Shown here: piece after piece, positions 12,351 to 46,940 of the stretch | Position numbering within the stretch: position 1 is the first letter of the stretch | How the letters are laid out: the number at the start of each line of letters is the position of its first letter | NCBI RefSeq assembly: GCF_006345805.1 | Contig: NC_043003.1 | Coordinates: 33,108,001-33,172,000, forward strand | DNA length: 64,000 bases | Source of the DNA: Octopus sinensis | Taxonomy: Eukaryota | Direction of reading: 5' to 3' | Position numbers and translations under genes: made by a program | The notes under the pieces: model-generated | Database searches by the model: none | Told to the model about the DNA's origin: nothing | What the model saw: the letters and a program-made list of their open reading frames with translations, nothing else

Positions 12351-13869
12351 CTAGTAGTATCGCCCGGCGTTGCTCGGGTTTGTAAGGGAAATAACTATAT
12401 AAGCATTTTTAGTGAGTTATAGCAAAAAGAATAGCAAAAAATGCATTAAAAATGGAATAAAAAATGATAGTAATTTTTTTTTAAAATCGTTGACTCATCG
12501 TAGACATTTTTAGAGAGTTACTTCCCTTATATAATAGCGAAAAATGCATTAAAATGGAATAAAAAATGATGGTAATTTTTTTTTATCGTTGACTCATCGT
12601 AGACATTTTTAGAGAGTTACTTACCTTATATAATATCGAAAAAATGCATTAAAATGGAATAAAAAATGATGGTAAATTCTTTTTTAAATCGTAGACTCAT
12701 CGTAGACGCGCGCTAATACCCAGAAGGGCTCGATATGAATCACGACTATAAGATACCCGGTTTTGGTTACACTGCACCGCAATGTTGGGAGTGGTTAGGA
12801 ATCTAAATCGTAGGAGACGACACACAACCTTACTTTTATATATAAAGACTAGCAGTATCGCCGCGTTGCTCGGGGTTGTAAGGGAAATAACTATATATGC
12901 ATTTCTATAGAGTTATAGCAAAAAAATGCATTAAAAATGGAATAAAAAGTGATGGTAATTTTTTTTTAAATCGTTGACTCAGTGTCTTCAAGCCATGAAG
13001 TCGTTGTTCTAAAAGAACGCTGGTCTCCTTGACAACGCTTTACGACGTTGATTTCCTTACACTCCCTTCCCCACAGCTTCACGAGGGAGAAGCAAACAGG
13101 TGCAGATGTGAGCGTGGACGCCAGTTCCGCTGCCATCGACACACGAATAATTATGCATTAAAATGGAATAAAAAATGATGTTAAATTATTTTTAAAATCG
13201 TAGACTCATCGTAGACGCGCGCTAATAGCCAGACGGGCTTGATATGAATCACAACTATAAGATACCCGAATTTGGTTAAACTGCACCGCAAAATGTGGGA
13301 GTAGTTAGGAATCTAAATCGAAGGGGACAGACACTCACACAACTACAGTTTTATATATATAGACTAGCAGTATCGCCCGGCGTTGCTCGGGTTTGTAGGG
13401 GAAATAACTATATAAGCATATTTAGAGAGTTACTTCCCTTATAAATTCGGGCTTTCTTAGCCATTTTTGTTTTGGTGTCTTCAAGCCATGAAGTCGTTGT
13501 TCTAAAAGAACGCTGGTTTCCTTCACAACGCATTACGACGTTGATTTCTTTACACTCCCTTCCCCACAGCTTCACGAGGGAGGGAAGGGGGAGAAGCAAA
13601 CAGGTGCAGCTGTGAGCGTGGACGCCAACTCCGCCGCCATCGACATACGATGCATTTTATGCATTAAAATGGAATAAAAAATGATGTTAAATTATTTTTA
13701 AAATCGTAGACTCATCGTTGACGCGCGCTAATAGTCAGACGGGCTCGATATGAATCACGACTATAAGATACCCGAATTTGGTTAAACTGCACCGCAAAAT
13801 GTGGGAGGAGTTAGGAATCTAAATCGAAGGGGACAGACACTCACACAACTAGAGTTTTATATATATAGA
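12351..13869 (-). mobile_element. Head-to-tail trimer of non-autonomous Helitrons
   Basis: Units are 12351-12848, 12849-13363 and 13364-13869. Each has 5' TC and 3' hairpin+CTAG on the minus strand. The internal junctions are exact CTAG|TC, and the array lies between A and T. Confidence 0.9.
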
Positions 13870-14880
13870 TATATTTTCTATGTTATATTTTCTTTTTTTA
13901 TGTTTTTGTTTTTGGTTTTTCACTGTTTGATTTGCCTATTAGTGGTTTTATCTCTAATTTAATTTATACAGATATATATCTCATTTGTATACATTTGTAT
14001 ATATAATGCGTGCACACACACACACACACACGCACACATATATATATACACATATATATATAATGTGTGCATTACGTAGTCGGTCGATTCAGCTGAAAAT
14101 AGGCACACCTATGGTAAAGGTGCTGACAAGTTTCCATGACAACTATTTTGTTCCTCAAATGAAAGGTGTCACCTCTAGGACAAAATTCCTCATCTTATAA
14201 AATGTGGCCCCAGCAGACCCGAATGAAATCGGGTTATATTAACCAAAATGTGAAAAGGGGTCTAAATGGGGCTGGAAGGGGATTAAAATTTCTAGGAGTG
14301 GGTGTTTAGGAATTCTCTGTTACATCAAGCTAAAAAATTTGCGCCAGCCTTTTAATCGTCAATGTGTTGCCGTCCATGATAAAGAAGTTTTGAATGCTTG
14401 CCATGGTGAGTCTACTGTCGTGAGAAAGAATCACTTCAAAAGTTGGTGTTTACGAATTTTCTTTTACATCAAGTTCTAAATTTTACGCCAGCCGTTAAAC
14501 TGTCAAAACGTTGCTGTCCGTCGTTAACAAATGCCAGCCATGGTGACTCTACTATCCTCAGATTCTATCCCTTCAAACTTTGGTTTCCAATATTTTATTA
14601 TTTTTCTTCAGCTCGCAAGTTCGTCTGTCCCTTTTAAATGTTAGCGTTTTGCTGTCTGCCTTGAAGCAGACCTTTCCATTGCCACTGCCTCATATTTCTG
14701 ATTGATCTTTCTAAATATTTTATTTCTCAACTTACTCAAGATCTTCTGTTGTTTATAAATGGGAGAGAGATAGATAAAGATAGAGAGTAAGAGAAAGCGA
14801 GGAAGAGTCCAAGAGAAAAGAAAAGTAAAGAGTGGGAAAGTGGGAAAGAGAGAAAGGAGAGAGAAACAAATACGGAGAAT

Positions 14881-17299: not shown

Positions 17300-17318
17300 T
17301 ACAAATACATATACATAT

Positions 17319-20300
17319 TCGCTGAAAGAATTGAAAAGCATAAATTCAAACCTAACAGCAGTGTTAAACAAACTCAACTTAACACCTCGACCTTCTACAC
17401 AAACTAACGAGGAAACCGAATCGAATAAAACACCCTCCGAAATATTCGAGAAAGTTGAAAATCTATGCGATACAATGACGACATTCTTCACAAACTTTAC
17501 GAAACAAGAGCAACAAAAAGAAGGAACACATGAGAAGAACCGAGCAACTTCAACATTACAAATAAAGAACCAAGTCCTCCCCCAATGGAGAACACTACAG
17601 CGAAACAGAAAATTCGCTTTTTGGAAAATGATACAAAATCAGAATAAAGCAGAGATTTACCAAAAATGGCTAGACTCAACACCCCTAGTCATACCCCGTA
17701 AATTACAAATCAAACCAATCTCGGAAGAACCAGAAGAACAAAGAAAACTTAGAGAAAAAATGTCATTAGAAAAAATGAAGATGGAAATAGAACTACTTAA
17801 GCTGAGAGCTAAAACGAATGAAGAAAAAGTAAAAACCATAGACGAGGAAATCAACGAAGAAGTCATCAAACTAATAGACGACAACAATACTGAAACATTA
17901 CCAGCACTATGGAATGAAGAATGTGAAAAAGAGGAACTTAAGTCCCTCCAACGATGGGAAAAGAGCGCCATCTGGTTTCTAGATTATGAAACCAACTTCA
18001 AAAATGAACACATATCCAACAACCCCTTCATAAAATTAAGCAAATCAAAACCAAATACCAATAGAACGGAACAACTACCAAGAAATCCTACCACAGTCTA
18101 CACCAGAAAAGTACACCTAAAACACACCCCACACTACCTACACCAACCCCAAAACACCTACAGAGGCCCACCACACCAGTTCGAAAATAGACATACCAAC
18201 AGAGCAGAACAACCACCAAGAAATCCAAACACACTCTACACCAGAAAAATGCATTTAAAACGCACCCCACACTACCTACACCAACCCCAAAACACTTATA
18301 GGGTCCCACCACACCATTCCACGAACCTAAGAGCCACAACATACAATACTATAAAATACAACCCACATAACCAAACCAAAACGCTACTACCAAACAACCA
18401 CCCCAGGAACCAAACCATACAACCACAACAAACAACAAATGCACTACGGAAGAAACAACTACCAACACAATATACCTGAGGAACTAAGACGTAACACTAG
18501 GTTCAACAACAGACTCCAGAACAGAGCACCACAAACTCACTCTGACAATTATAACAACATGAGACAGATAAATAATAGCTTTGAACATAACTACACCAAC
18601 CATTTTTTAGACCCCACACACAGGAACAGGGACACACGATGGCAAAGGACAAACAAAAGAAACCTCAGGTAATTAAGATAATCAATCTCTCAAACAAAGA
18701 ACTTACACCTAACGAAATAAGCATACTCTCCAAAGGACTTAAATTTACACCCACCCCACAACGTTCTAATTATTATGAAATGAAAGATGATATTTCGGAA
18801 TTTTGCAGAAAACTAAGACTCACCGAGGCATTTCAAGACAAACAAATAGAGGAGGACTCAATAGCTAGAAACAAGAGCAATTACACCCCCACCAAAGGTA
18901 AGAATAAAGCCTTAGACCGCTATTGTGACTACATAACTAATTTCCCGTTTCAATTCATCAAGAAACAAAAACACAGCCCTAACTTCAACAAAAGAGAATG
19001 GAACGACCTCATCAAACTAAGAGAAGACAAAACAATAACAATTAAGGAGGCAGATAAGGGCAACGCGATAGTAATAATGAATACAAACAATTATAAAAAT
19101 TTAGTGCTATCCCTATTAAGAGATGAAACGTATTATGAAAGGGCCCAACAGTATAACCAGCAAAAATAATGCATAACCTTAGGACATTAATCAACACATA
19201 CCAAGAAGGACTCACGAACAAGGAGTATGAATACATCACTAACTTCAAATGCAAATCGAGTTTGTTCTATGGTATCCCTAAGGTACACAAAAGCCAAACC
19301 ATTAGAGAAACGTGCAAAACATCCACCGACACACTCATCAAAATCCCTTCACCAAATGATCTTAAACTAAGACCGATAATAGTAGGGCCAGCATGTGAAA
19401 CTCACCGCCTCAGCAATTTCTTAGACACACTTCTTAAACCTTTCCTAAAACACATCAAAAGCTACGTAAGAGACGATATAGATATGCTCAACCACCTCCC
19501 TAAAACAGTCAATGAGAAAACCCTTCTAGTATCATTCGACGTAGTTAATCTTTATTCTAACATCCCTCACAACCTAGGAATAGAAGCGATCACCTTCTGG
19601 CTGAATAATACCCCTTGAACTCCCAACTCGCATAAACAAAGACCTTATAATAGAAGGACTTAGATTCATTTTAGAGAACAATTATTTTATTTTTGACAAT
19701 GATTTCTACAGGCAAAGATCGGGAACAGCGATGGGCACGCGTACTGCACCATCTTTTGCCAACCTAGTGATGGGATACCTCGAGAAAATACTATACCGGA
19801 TGACACTCGAGAAAATGGAAACACCTTCGTCACCTATATCCATAACAACTGGAAAAGATACCTCGATGACTGTTTCATCATCTGGACAAAGCATAGAGAA
19901 ACTTGAGGAATTTAAAATTCTATTAAATGGAATAAATGACAATATACAATTCACGATGGACCACAACGAAAAAGAATTACCATTTTTAGACATCCTCATT
20001 AAGAAAACCGGCGCAACAAAATAGAGACAGATATCTACTATAAACCGACAGACTCTAAACAGTACCTACCCTTTGATTCATGCCACCCACGACACACTAG
20101 AATGAATGTCCCTTTTTGTTTAGCTAGAAGGATTTGCACCATAATATCAGACACAAACACCCGACACACACGTCTCCAGGAACTTAGAACCACACTCACA
20201 AATAGAAACTATCCACAGCCCCTAATAGACAGTGCAATCCAACGGGTACTTAAATTAAGTATAGAAAACCTGAGACAAACAAAACCAAAAAAGAAAGAAC

Positions 20301-20920
20301 AATTAAAAACCCTTCCCTACATCTCTACACACAATCCACTCAACAATGAGGCCTTCAACACCAAACTACAAAGCACAGCCCTACTAAAGGGAGACCCAAA
20401 GATGAACCGGATCCTCGAAACACACACCATCATTAAAAGTAAACGGCAACCAAAATCCTTGAAAAGGATTTTAACCCAAGCTACACTGCACTCAACATCA
20501 ACCACAAAACCAGCAGTTAGAAAATGTGGAAGGCCCAACTGCGGAATCTGTGTCATCTTGAAAGAAGGATCAGAATTTATTCTGGAACAAGGCCACCAGT
20601 TCACCATTAGAACAAACTTCACCTGCGCATCAGAAAACTTAATTTACGTCATAACATGCGCAGGCTGCAATAGGCAGTATATAGGCCATACAAAAAATAG
20701 CTTACGTAACAGGATGGTGGTGCATAAATCACAAATTAGAAACCCTGATTACTGCAAAATACCGGTCAGCGGATGTGCTGGAAATGTAAATCCGAAATTT
20801 ACAACTAACCCGCTCTATAAATTCAGTGACAACGCAACCTTCACACAACGCCAAAATAAAGAACTATATTTCATAAAAAAATTTAGACCAAGTTTAAACA
20901 CCCTGGGCCAGGAATACTAA
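17319..20920 (+). pseudogene. PLE ORF (coiled-coil N-terminus, reverse transcriptase, GIY-YIG endonuclease), frameshifted
   Basis: Motifs include INLSNKELT..LSKGLKFTPTP, YGIPKVHK, KLRPII, LVSFDVVNLYSNIP, GTAMGTRTAPSFANL, a frameshifted WKRYLDDCF and NLIYVITCAGCNRQYIGHT. It is split by several single-base indels. Confidence 0.92.
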
Positions 20921-21088
20921 AACAAAAGATAAGTCCTCCGAAAAGGAGAACCAAATTTCACCACGGCCGCTACTTCAAACAGACACTCACTCTGACGGAA
21001 ATATGCCTTAGTAAAAAAGGAAAAAAATTCTTTCGTGCAAATCTGACCCTGATACATACGATACAGCTAAGGGTCAGACCCGATTCTG

Positions 21089-21551
21089 ATTGGTCAACAA
21101 GTTGATGACGTCTATCTCTGCTAGAATGGACAGGATACAAACAGGGGACAGTCATTAGTCAGAATATTGATGACGTCCTTTTCTGCTTGAATAGTCACCT
21201 AACAAGTACAGACAGGGGGCAGATCTAATGTAGCTATAAGTCGTGATTGGGCAGAATCTGGATGACGTCCCGCTCTGCTTGACTAACGAAGCGACTGGTC
21301 AAAACAGGAAACAAACAAGAGGCAGATATAATGCAGCGATTGGTCAAAATAATGATGACGTCCCGTTCTACTTGACTAACGAAGCGACTGGTCAAAACAG
21401 GAAACAAACAAGAGGGAGTTATAATGCAGCGATTGGTCAAAATAATGATGACGTCCGTTCTACTTGATTAAAGCCACCTAACGAAACGAATGGTCAAAAC
21501 ATTGATGACGTCACGCTACGCTAGATTGACCACCTAACAGGCATTATAAAA
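21089..21551 (+). promoter_or_regulatory. Candidate Pol II promoter: six ATTGG-N12-TGACGTC modules followed by TATA box
   Basis: Modules start at 21089, 21154 (ATTAG), 21246, 21339, 21432 and 21489 (AATGG), each with a 12-nt spacer. TATAAAA is at 21545 and an Inr-like TCA at 21571-21573. Confidence 0.7.
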
Positions 21552-21989
21552 CCGAGCATTTCACAAAAACTCACTAGAACCACCCAGCGAACTTCCACCA
21601 TGGGTCATCACAATTGCTTAAGGTAAAAATGAATTCCTCGCTCTTTCGGAAACATCAATCTTCTGTATTGACCGCTTTCCACCACTTTGATCTGCTTTTT
21701 GTATTGAATACGTATCGCCACCGTGGGCCACTGCATCGAACACTTTGAACATATACTTCAAACTATATATCAACTATACATGAACTATATATCAACTATA
21801 CATGAACTCTAAGATGTCTGACTCCGTTGTGTATTATAAATGAATTTCTTGTGTTTGACGGCATGAGCTGTCTTTTTTTTATATATAACTTTTTTTGATA
21901 AGGTTCATTTCAGGAACTGAAACATGTTATAATCTATATATAAAAATAAAAAATTGTATAATACAGCAGCATTTTCGAACTTCATTTTT

Positions 21990-22029
<40 letters not shown>

Positions 22030-32086: not shown

Positions 32087-32160
32087 TACAGCTTACCACG
32101 TGGGGATAATCGAAATTCCTCCCTTTGTGTTACTATATATATATATATATATAAAGGAAC

Positions 32161-32900
32161 ATTGGCGCACAGCAGTGTTAAATTATGAGCAGAATTTACG
32201 TTAGTTGAAATATGTTTGTCACATATTTCAAATGCTAAAAATGCACTGCAGTTAACGTGGAGAAAAATCTCTCTTATGGTAAAAAGGTGTGAAGAAACCC
32301 AGTTTGTTCAGTGTCAACCTCTCTTACGAATCCCAGACATCGTTGTTCCAAGTTTTTTGACTCTTGCCAATGAGGCAAATCTGAACGAACTTAAAACTGT
32401 AGGTTTATATATAATTCAGTCAACCCGTTGACTGATTTGCGCTAGTAGGTCGCCCGATCGAGGCAAATAACGAAGCATTGGCGCAAAGCAGTGTTTAGGT
32501 ATGGGCGGAAGTTGAAATATGTTTGTCACATATTTCAACTGCTAAAATGTAAATACACTGCAGTTAGGGCAGAGAAAAATCTCTCATATGGTAAAAAGTG
32601 TTCAGTGTCACCCTCTGTTACGAATCCCAGACATCGATGTTTCGAGTTTTTAAAACATTTGTCAATGAGATATATCTATGAGAGGCAACTCCAAACGAAT
32701 TTACTTAATCTGTAGCTTTATATATAATTGAGTCAATACGTTGACTGATTTGCACTCGTAGATCGCCCTATCAAGGTAAATAACGGAGCATTGGCGCAAA
32801 ACAGCGTTCAGCTATGAGCAGAATTTAGGTTAGCTGAAATATGTTTATCACATATTTCAACTGCTAGAAGGCAGATACACTGGAGTTACCGTGGAGAAAA
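32161..32900. repeat. Diverged tandem repeat, ~315-bp unit, about 2.3 copies
   Basis: Units start at attggcgca at 32161, 32477 and 32790. Confidence 0.85.
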
Positions 32901-33008
32901 TGTCTTGAACTAACCTAAATTCTACCTTGTAGCATTTGCAGTATGTGACACTTGCAACTGCCCCACCGAACTCATTTCCAGGTATCTTGACCGTGTCCTT
33001 TCCCCCTA

Positions 33009-33908
33009 GTGGCTTCACTCCCCTCTCACATCCATGACACCAACAACGAACTTCGTTTGTTCAACTCTTTCTCTTTCCCTCCTGGCCCCTCTAAACTTCT
33101 CTTCACTCTCAGCATCCAGAGCATTTATACAGGGATCCCTCACCACGAGGAGCTGCGTGCACTCCAGCATTTCCTAGATCTTCGACCCAACCCCCAAGCC
33201 GACATATCCACACTCGTTCGTCTGGTCGAACTTGTCCTCTCACTGAACTGCTTCTCGGGAGTGGCCATGGGAACGATAATGAGCCCCAACTATGCGAACC
33301 TGTTGGTTGGCCACGTTGAGGCCCAAATATTCTCAAGGTTCATTGGTCCCACTCCCGAACTATACGGCTGTTATATTGACGACTGTATCTGTGCGACCTC
33401 ACTCTCCTGCGAACATCTAGACTCTTTCCTCTCTTTTGTCAGATCTTTCCATCCCGCCCTCTACTTCTCCTGCACTATCTCTGACACTTCTGTCTCCTTT
33501 CTTGACATTTCGGTCAGCATTCATCGCTTCATTCTCACCACCTCTATCAACTACAAACACACAGATTCACACTCATACCTCAAATTCTCCACCTCCCTCC
33601 CTAAACACACCAAGCTTTCCCGTCTCCCATTTCCCCTCACCTACCACCCCACTACCCTACCTCTCCAACGAACCATTCTCCGAGCTTTCCGGCGACTTCA
33701 GTCCGACCTCTTCACTTCGCACATCTTCTCTAGCCGACCCTTCCCCTCCTCCAAACGAGTCCACAACCTACGAGACCTCTTCGTCCACAGCTACTTCCCT
33801 AACCCAACCTCCCAACACGGCTCGTTCCTCTGCTCCCGCCCACGCTGTCGCACTTGCCTGTCTGTGTGCGGATTGTCCCTGCACAGAGGCCATCCGTTTG
33901 CGCCGTGA
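33009..33908 (+). pseudogene. PLE reverse transcriptase remnant with Cys linker
   Basis: Motifs include SIYTGIPH, GVAMGTIMSPNYANL, YGCYIDDC, SVSFLDISV, YKHTDSHSYL and CSRPRCRTC. Internal deletions are evident and most of the GIY-YIG domain is missing. Confidence 0.88.
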
Positions 33909-34705
33909 ACAGTGATTAATCTCTCTTCGCTCTTTGCGCCACATGGGCTCAACTTTCCTCCCCTCTCCTCTCTCCCCTCACACCTACTTCCTCCAACCCA
34001 CCTCTCCTCTCTTGCTCCGACTCCAACTGCTCTTCACTCCTACTCTCCTCTCTTCTCTGCACTCCCACCCACTTTCTCCCTTCTCCCTTCATCGTCACCC
34101 TTCTCTCGTAACCCTATCCCACCCATACACAATCCAACCCTACCTTCCCTATCCATCCCATCCCAACCCAACAGATCCATTATACCCACTCTTACATACC
34201 CCACCTCTACCACCACCCTCAGCCTACCCACATACACTACTTCTACCCGCACCCTCACCTACTCCACCCCCACCCTCACCTACTCCACCCCCACCCTCAC
34301 CTACTCCACCCCCACCCTCACCTACTCCACCCCCACTCTTGGTTTCCTCACTCTCGCCACCCCAACACCATCATACCACAGCACACACCGCTACACCATA
34401 CACCACCATACTACACAACACCACATTACATCACATCACGCCACCACGCACACACTAGCACTGACCACTCTCCAGCCCCACATCCACACACCTACACATA
34501 CACAAACGCAAACGTCAAGGTCACTGGCCCTCTTCCACACGCACATACATACTCTCTTATACACACACATTTTTGGGATCACCACTACTTTATTATCTCC
34601 CCTTCCGCTAGCTCTCCTGTGTGACCCCTCTAACCGGCATTCGCCATGATAGATCGCTAGCCACTACACATTCTTTATTTTCTCTCCTTGTTTTTTTCTG
34701 TGTTC

Positions 34706-45679: not shown

Positions 45680-45776
45680 TATATAAACATATATTGATAT
45701 TGATATTGATTCTAGTTTCAGCCCATGAGCTGTGGCCATGCTGGAGCACCGCCATTATATATATACATATATATAC

Positions 45777-45833
<57 letters not shown>

Positions 45834-45863
45834 ATATACATATATATATATACATATATATAC

Positions 45864-45940
<77 letters not shown>

Positions 45941-45945
<5 letters not shown>

Positions 45946-46354
45946 TACAGTAGCATCCGCCCTTAGGGGTTAGCCATATTGAAATGGCAAAAATACGTCA
46001 CGATGTGTTACCGCTACTGTATATAACTCACTTTGATATTTATCATTGTTTGATTTCACTTTTTCAATATCAGCGACAGTGGACGCTGGAAAAAGTATAA
46101 GTATTTGTGAAGGAAATCTAATACTCGCCGACAACTATGATTGTCACACGCTGACGAGAGGTCAATACCTCGAAACTCGAGTCCGTGTGTATCATAAGTT
46201 GAAGACGGGAAGGATGACTTTCCTTTGCAAATACTGACAGGACACAGAAAGTGTGTCTATGGCCAGCTGGAGGAGTGTGACCTCCTGGGGCTAAAAACTA
46301 CAGTAGCATCCACCCTTAGGGGTTAGCCATATTGAAATGGCAAAAATACGTCAC
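45941..46354 (+). mobile_element. Retrozyme-like element: 353-nt non-coding monomer with 61-nt terminal direct repeat
   Basis: 45941-46001 equals 46294-46354 with one mismatch. It has a central canonical HHR, (TA)n on both sides and no recognisable coding sequence. Confidence 0.85.
46133..46200 (+). ncRNA. Canonical type I hammerhead ribozyme with extended helix I
   Basis: Reads AACTATGAT tgt CACACG CTGACGA GAGG tcaata CCTC GAAAC TCGA GTC CGTGTG t ATCATAAGTT. Predicted cleavage is after C46183. Confidence 0.93.
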
Positions 46355-46363
46355 TATATATAT

Positions 46364-46406
<43 letters not shown>

Positions 46407-46439
46407 ATATATTATATATATATACATATATACATATAC

Positions 46440-46508
<69 letters not shown>

Positions 46509-46518
46509 CATATATATG

Positions 46519-46940
46519 TGAAATACAAAAAACGGGACAAGGACGCAAATTATCTAGACAAACGATAAAAGAAAAACAAGGACGGGTCATTCGGAGTTTT
46601 CTATCCTCGGTCGAATTCCAGATTATCTTTGCAATTTCGGTTGCTTATACTCGATATTGCTCCAATCTGGCCAGCCCCAAGGAAAAAATAAGCTAAGAGA
46701 ATAATTACATTCCTTGGAAGAAAGCACCGAATGTATACAAAAACAAGGACGGAATAAAAAACAGACGAATGTTACACAAATACAAATAACAGGACATAAC
46801 AACAGGTTTCTTTCGACTAAGGACGAATTAAATTAAGCTGGCGTATGTGGAAGTAAAACCTTACGGCAGGGACATGTGTGCTGTCAATTATGAAACACGA
46901 CTGTCAATACATAAACCTGATGATTGCAAAACGCTTGAAA
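46519..46940 (-). mobile_element. Unclassified non-coding repeat ending in (TA)n, copy 2
   Basis: Diverged inverted homologue of 45015-45470. Confidence 0.7.

Follow-up and report, generated by a model that had tools for sequence, protein, structure and literature searches.

A candidate retrozyme-type hammerhead element in a (TA)n tract of the Octopus sinensis genome

Introduction

Metazoan non-LTR retrozymes are repeats with a unit of 150-450 bp, a G+C content below 45%, a type I hammerhead ribozyme (HHR) and a self-paired RNA, and their units measure 350-390 bp in mussel and 220-240 bp in coral and include Rtz_331 and Rtz_353 in axolotl (PMC7229834). In the invertebrate retrozymes, helix III of the ribozyme is composed of 2 bp and a tetraloop (PMC7229834), and efficient cleavage by most metazoan type I hammerheads requires another copy in the vicinity, as is the case in tandem repeats (PMC4209133). 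According to a preprint, vertebrate retrozymes are derived from the pseudo-LTRs of Penelope-like elements (PLEs), and the monomer copies found in that vertebrate survey are probably non-transposing offspring (10.64898/2026.07.22.740005). Among cephalopods, 235 Hammerhead_1 matches were counted in the genome of the giant squid (PMC6962438).

The PLEs themselves insert as partial tandems with a tail (PMC8557442), and a U3-A8 covariation has already been described for their hammerheads (PMC4209133). A CX2-5CxxC linker is a trait of the Neptune and Nematis clades, with a similar motif in Naiads; this linker was proposed to steer insertion into microsatellites, and (TA)n is the stated preference of Naiads (PMC8557442). 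Non-autonomous derivatives of PLEs from Chlamys, such as MRC1, form pseudo-LTRs or partial and multicopy head-to-tail insertions by means of the PLE machinery (PMC8557442). In addition, newt satellite 2 and salamander repeats, as summarized in later papers, consist of units of roughly 330 nt, and their type I hammerhead, having a weak helix III, requires a double-hammerhead (Forster 1988 via PMC4209133, PMC7229834). Here we describe an octopus locus that has much in common with these systems, and compare it with each of them.

Results and discussion

The locus is a 414-bp island of unique sequence at positions 45941-46354 (plus strand) of the window, by which we mean the whole 64-kb stretch of Octopus sinensis DNA that was analysed, and it is enclosed by (TA)n tracts on both sides (45756-45940, which may be target or tail, and 46355-46517). 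An original prediction, made by reading the sequence, held that the two ends of this island are 61-nt copies of one another with a period of 353 nt and one differing base. Repeat search and blastn bear out every part of this: the 5' copy (45941-46001) and the 3' copy (46294-46354) start 353 nt apart and differ by a single mismatch, G45959 versus A46312. The match can be extended to 64 nt at the cost of a second mismatch, the extra bases belonging only to the TA flank. The insert accordingly amounts to 1.17 head-to-tail copies of a 353-nt unit, the G+C content of which is 42.5%, compared with 34.7% for the window. The same reading had seen no coding remnant, and the ORF scan agrees, as the longest open frame in the trimerised monomer comprises 66 codons on either strand. 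Both borders switch cleanly from unique sequence to (TA)n, outside which no decayed remains of the unit follow, and perfect (TA)≥4 tracts make up just 6.4-6.9% of the window.

Since the flanks consist of (TA)n, a target-site duplication and microhomology at the junctions cannot be read. The positions of the ends are nevertheless informative. From the predicted cleavage site described below, it is 243 nt upstream to the start of the insert and 171 nt downstream to its end, and because both ends lie away from this site, a linear monomer cut by the ribozyme is excluded as the template. The 353-nt period of the redundancy instead calls for a template that is head-to-tail or a 353-nt circle, or else for descent from an array. 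A circle is thus one of three routes to the 61-nt redundancy; a multimeric transcript and an array that was trimmed or collapsed would be the other two. The proposal that the redundancy arose by reverse transcription past the start of a circular or multimeric RNA therefore stands in so far as the cut linear monomer is excluded, but it does not stand as the sole account, as a trimmed or collapsed array explains the redundancy too. Judged by the single difference in 61 nt and the intact ribozyme core, the insert is probably fairly young.

The (TA)n tract that houses the element also contains a second small island (45685-45755), which holds a 19-24-nt piece, GTGGCCATGCTGGAGCACCGCC, of a repeat found at several sites in the window and in a segment of O. 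vulgaris OX597819.1 (hereafter L001). This island is probably a truncated SINE-like insertion, and its presence in the same tract implies that (TA)n may be a mere general landing pad.

In the middle of the element, a canonical hammerhead of type I is located at 46145-46189 (plus strand). Every invariant core position is present when read directly from the sequence: C3-U4-G5-A6-C7-G8-A9 correspond to CUGACGA at 46151-46157, G12-A13-A14-A15.1 to 46172-46175 and U16.1-C17 to 46182-46183, and the G10.1-C11.1 pair is included as well. Helix II contains 5 bp (GAGGU/ACCUC) with the loop CAAU, helix III contains 2 bp (C-G plus the UCGA loop), and helix I contains 6 bp (CACACG/CGUGUG), followed by an internal loop and then 5-6 further pairs. 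Helix I is open, with helices II and III capped, which is the type I layout. The predicted cleavage after C46183 agrees with the earlier placement of the cut at 46183/46184, and the prediction of a fully canonical hammerhead at this place proved to be correct in all core nucleotides.

A screen against Rfam, which had been proposed together with the prediction, gave a result that is positive in alignment and negative in score. RF00163 aligns end to end with 46145-46189 at 32.2 bits (E = 3.3e-6 in a 501-nt search), which falls below the gathering score of 34 bits. Consequently, routine annotation overlooks this hammerhead: a default Rfam gathering scan of the window returned no match, and a filtered E-value scan of the whole window also missed the motif. 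We then relied on a strict descriptor that demands the core, the G10.1-C11.1 pair, a helix II of at least 4 bp, a palindromic helix III and a helix I of at least 4 bp. This descriptor matched once in 84.7 kb of octopus DNA (the 64-kb window plus 20.7 kb of O. vulgaris DNA) and in none of 200 dinucleotide shuffles, and a chance origin of the hammerhead was accordingly rejected. The significant E-value and the shuffle control together argue for a true motif despite the sub-threshold score. With our own covariance model, built from the element and metagenomic relatives, the hammerhead scores 56 bits, and a search with this model with filters off revealed no second canonical hammerhead.

The RNA of the unit is predicted to be strongly self-paired. 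Folded as a 353-nt circle, it reaches -114.3 kcal/mol, compared with -80.6 +/- 5.3 kcal/mol for 200 dinucleotide shuffles (z = -6.4), with 62% of the bases paired; the 414-nt linear genomic form gives z = -5.8. In the predicted fold, helix I is prolonged through stretches of 6+6+4+4 bp (5' strand 46124-46151, 3' strand 46185-46209) and then by a 17-bp helix (46100-46116 paired with 46219-46235) that lengthens it into a rod, and the rest of the unit forms a branched rod closing on the cleavage site. Such a rod from the extended helix I would, if the model is right, keep both ends of the cut monomer together. Four hairpins that had been picked out by eye (45973-45988, 46071-46088, 46241-46257 and 46269-46285) all recur in the minimum-energy structure. 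The one difference between the end repeats falls at a predicted pair, where G45959 faces U45970 and A46312 converts the G.U pair to A-U; as a single event, this carries no statistical weight.

Helix III and loop 3 (46175-46182) together read ACUCGAGU, a perfect 8-nt palindrome that permits a double-hammerhead. The calculated energies are +2.9 kcal/mol for the hairpin and -10.7 kcal/mol for the intermolecular duplex. Likewise, when the 45-nt motif is folded as a single hammerhead (-8.7 kcal/mol), it is less stable than in an inactive alternative (-14.5 kcal/mol), and the minimum-energy structure of two molecules is the double hammerhead (-33.9 kcal/mol). With so weak a palindromic helix III, the competent fold is predicted to be favoured only in a dimer or tandem. 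The single ribozyme of the present locus should, on these energies, cleave poorly in cis and make one cut at most. Having one ribozyme, the stretch 45941-46354 can itself release neither monomer nor circle, and the locus should for the same reason be a dead-end daughter copy.

Two PLE copies, both 5'-truncated and both carrying a CX2-5CxxC linker, were recognized in the window by ORFs, domain searches and alignments. PLE#1 (17310-21994, plus strand) is frameshifted and has a C-terminal GIY-YIG domain, identified with Pfam, the linker CGRPNCGIC and (TA)n on both sides; its GIY-YIG ORF (20102-20920) matches an annotated Octopus vulgaris protein with 92% identity along 42% of the ORF. PLE#2 (32926-33890, plus strand) is an RT fragment that ends in the linker CSRPRCRTC, and a protein search with its RT returned no octopus proteins. 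L001, the locus of the O. vulgaris protein matched by PLE#1, and the window have several repeats in common (78-95% identity), which together with the protein match marks the window as Octopus DNA, of O. vulgaris or a near relative. The PLE#1 family has one copy at about 17310-21994 of the window and another at about 8154-11850 of L001, with different 5' truncation points. In both copies the last bases are TTTTTACAAA, after which (TA)n begins, and (TA)n also precedes each of them, which suggests, from the sequences, that this PLE with its CX4CxxC linker targets (TA)n.

Some 63 nt before the 3' end of the PLE#1 family lies a minimal hammerhead with the core UUGAUAA, in which U3-A8 replaces C3-G8. 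Its helix II contains 5 bp and is followed by GAAA, helix III is a single bp closing a palindromic CAUG loop, and helix I contains 4 bp. This ribozyme is intact in O. vulgaris (L001, 11727-11769) and mutated in the window (21891-21935, plus strand), where it was found with our own covariance model, a descriptor and an alignment. A descriptor with the U3-A8 core had no matches in 200 shuffles, and Rfam scans detected the U3-A8 motifs of neither the window nor L001. The 3' UTR of PLE#1 in the window (21093-21540) further contains five repeats of about 92 nt, each with a TGATGACGTC core (CRE-like TGACGTC), which are absent from the O. vulgaris copy. A hammerhead in these repeats was considered and rejected, as the TGACGTC core comes without ribozyme architecture.

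On the minus strand, a decayed tandem array (32130-32925) was uncovered by our own covariance model and self-alignment. It consists of units of 322, 307 and about 125 nt, i.e., about 2.4 units that are roughly 84% alike, and each full unit contains the decayed form of a type I hammerhead-like motif, in which the core is U3-A8, helix I measures 6 bp and the 10-nt palindrome ACAUCGAUGU is present. For the motif of unit A (32671-32624), the score is 15 bits and E is roughly 0.04; the hammerhead-like sites are 294 nt apart, and the predicted fold of the array unit is more stable than those of shuffled sequences (z = -3.5). At its 3' end the array breaks off within a unit in (TA)n, and at its 5' end it adjoins the truncated 5' end of PLE#2 head-to-head, a layout that recalls the inverted arrangements described for PLE insertions (PMC8557442). 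Altogether, it has the appearance of either an old array of a retrozyme-like repeat or a PLE terminal region in inverted orientation. We rejected homology of its roughly 310-nt units with the 353-nt unit, because their local alignment score is no better than that of shuffles. After the RT of PLE#2, at the place expected for the endonuclease, lies a low-complexity open frame rich in Pro, Thr and Ser with 21-nt repeats (33912-34649).

The PLE machinery that had been assumed to be at hand in the same window is thus represented by remnants. Hammerhead-bearing PLEs do reside there together with the element, namely PLE#1 with its U3-A8 family hammerhead and PLE#2 with the adjoining hammerhead array, but the copies are defective and are not working machinery. 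Besides, blastn found no sequence shared between the element and PLE#1, PLE#2 or the L001 copy, and 12 kb separate the element from the closest sequence that codes for RT.

Further copies were sought in several ways. A second copy of the 353-nt unit was found neither in the 64-kb window by blastn nor in the 20.7 kb of O. vulgaris DNA. Exact protein look-ups with four pseudo-ORFs of the element gave no match, and a word-indexed protein search with the 66-codon plus-strand frame gave no further copy. The 66-codon minus-strand frame had a sole HMMER match, a repetitive protein unrelated to the element, which we discarded as spurious. Scans of viral contigs and of prokaryotic genome contigs also yielded no further copy, and in a metagenome scan with a general hammerhead pattern, similarity among the matches listed was at the level of the ribozyme only. 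As one copy has been seen, a multi-copy family is something that we assume.

We interpret the locus as a genomic copy of a small, non-autonomous retroelement of the non-LTR retrozyme type, a dead-end daughter that was probably mobilised by a PLE from a circular or multimeric RNA, and we assign this reading a probability of roughly 0.6. The features of metazoan retrozymes (PMC7229834) are largely found here: a canonical type I hammerhead with a helix III of 2 bp and a tetraloop, a non-coding unit of a few hundred nucleotides with low G+C, an RNA predicted to be self-paired, and coexistence with PLEs that bear minimal hammerhead variants. The element moreover lies in (TA)n, as do both copies of the hammerhead-bearing PLE#1 family. 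Unlike the published retrozymes, which occur as dimers or longer arrays with at least two ribozymes, the octopus element comprises 1.17 units with one hammerhead, and it is likened to them by described traits and not by sequence. The original designation of the element as retrozyme-like hence holds for the ribozyme, the non-coding 353-nt unit and the predicted self-pairing, and falls short in the number of ribozymes at the locus.

By analogy with described systems, a life cycle of the following kind may be envisaged. A tandem master copy elsewhere would be transcribed, adjacent ribozymes would cut 353-nt monomers out of the transcript, and a cellular RNA ligase would circularise these. A PLE RT/GIY-YIG endonuclease that nicks (TA)n could then copy the circular or multimeric RNA for 414 nt, and this would leave the 61-nt redundancy as the small-element equivalent of a PLE pseudo-LTR. 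A bolder version, which we would advance only tentatively and consider somewhat doubtful, is that octopus harbours an active family of 353-nt hammerhead circular RNAs and that the 61-nt overshoot is the footprint of a PLE RT that went through more than one round of a circular RNA and integrated the product at a (TA)n nick. If that were true, the rolling-circle mobilisation proposed for animal retrozymes could for the first time be tested at the level of sequence, by a survey of where each copy starts and ends.

The partial-tandem insert with a short terminal extension and the insertion into (TA)n match the architecture described for PLEs (PMC4209133, PMC8557442), and the palindromic helix III, implying action as a dimer, matches the hammerheads of their pseudo-LTRs (PMC4209133). 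Unlike PLE pseudo-LTRs, the element has no RT/EN ORF attached to it and its hammerhead is canonical, whereas those of the local PLEs are of the U3-A8 type with a helix III of 1 bp. The MRC1 derivatives of Chlamys are similarly short and non-coding; however, they are algal, contain no hammerhead of the canonical kind and share 3' similarity with their autonomous partner, while for the octopus element no such similarity was found. As far as the summaries of newt satellite 2 go, it is alike in unit size and in a type I hammerhead with a weak helix III, and differs in forming very large tandem arrays, as opposed to an isolated 1.17-mer in a microsatellite.

An origin from a SINE or tRNA was rejected, as ARAGORN finds no tRNA in 45941-46354 and no B-box occurs there at up to 2 mismatches. 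Sm-alpha of Schistosoma is a SINE-like dispersed short repeat with a type I hammerhead, and the octopus element differs from it in having no tRNA-like part or B-box.

The alternative with most in its favour, unlikely as we hold it to be, is that the locus is the remnant or the assembly collapse of a longer, satellite-like tandem array of the 353-nt hammerhead unit, so that the redundancy would be what was left of a neighbouring unit after a deletion or an expansion of (TA)n. The retrozymes described so far typically form arrays that range in size from a dimer to a large multimer (PMC7229834), the window itself contains the decayed 2.4-unit array of another hammerhead repeat that also stops mid-unit at (TA)n, and repeats flanked by microsatellites are easily misassembled. 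The clean transitions into (TA)n at both borders, without decayed unit sequence, speak against such a remnant, as does the single base by which the 61-nt copies differ, and partial tandems are to be expected of PLE-type insertions anyway. An array remnant might still belong to a retrozyme family, as the two explanations differ only in the origin of the redundancy.

We find it distinctly improbable that the element is a solo pseudo-LTR with its tail, left over from a heavily truncated or internally deleted member of an autonomous PLE family that the window lacks. PLE pseudo-LTRs do bear hammerheads, and most PLE hammerheads are single dispersed motifs of truncated copies (PMC4209133); some 30 PLE families have been reported for O. 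vulgaris (PMC13282606), two of which were compared here, and retrozymes of Xenopus match PLE termini (10.64898/2026.07.22.740005). Nonetheless, only an internal deletion could yield a period of 353 nt from a PLE unit of kilobase size, the PLE families compared (PLE#1, PLE#2 and the L001 copy) show no similarity, and the nearest RT sequence is distant. The canonical hammerhead, with C3-G8, a looped helix I of 6 bp and a helix III of 2 bp, is of the retrozyme type, PLE hammerheads being minimal (PMC7229834), with a short helix I and a helix III of 0-1 bp, and the local ones are indeed of the minimal U3-A8 kind. Least credible of all is a structured RNA or ribozyme retained by the host, i.e., a regulatory or domesticated, non-mobile hammerhead. 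The core is intact, the predicted structure is strong and the only difference between the repeat copies preserves a predicted base pair, but one substitution has no statistical weight and no gene context is seen, and the microsatellite location and the terminal redundancy constitute an insertion signature that renders retention by the host very unlikely.

Taken as a retrozyme-type element, the locus looks like a cephalopod example of the known animal retrozymes. The literature that we searched for retrozyme or hammerhead together with octopus or cephalopod reported no octopus or cephalopod retrozyme, and a 2026 repeat annotation of O. vulgaris mentions neither ribozyme nor retrozyme. Given that mussel retrozymes of comparable size and the squid Hammerhead_1 matches are already known, the element is a modest addition and no new kind. 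Should there be a family to which this copy belongs, the range of animal retrozymes would come to include cephalopods, and the locus would provide a clean insertion whose ends inform on the template, with the cut linear monomer excluded. The pairing of the element with a PLE lineage that has the same (TA)n target bears on how retrozymes are mobilised, and the useful details are accordingly the informative ends, the predicted dimer dependence of the ribozyme and the (TA)n target in common with a hammerhead-bearing PLE. Moreover, since the motif of the element lies just under the Rfam threshold and the U3-A8 hammerheads of the PLEs are invisible to Rfam, routine annotation undercounts cephalopod ribozymes.

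Several other repeats were noticed along the way. Among the matches listed from the metagenomes, twelve contigs contain a dispersed repeat of more than 1.1 kb, and those whose names were listed belong to Ga0126336. This repeat has a type I hammerhead whose helix III, GAAACUCGAGUC, is the same as that of the element, and its homology begins at two discrete 5' ends, like that of 5'-truncated retroelements. Another metagenome locus contains two identical hammerheads 662 nt apart. Just 3' of the (TA)n tract that follows the element, an exact 14-nt repeat, AAAAACAAGGACGG, occurs at 46572-46585 and 46739-46752, 167 nt apart, which perhaps belongs to some other repeat or matches by chance. Elsewhere in the window, at 13000-13870, two tandem units of about 500 bp are 92-97% identical to each other.
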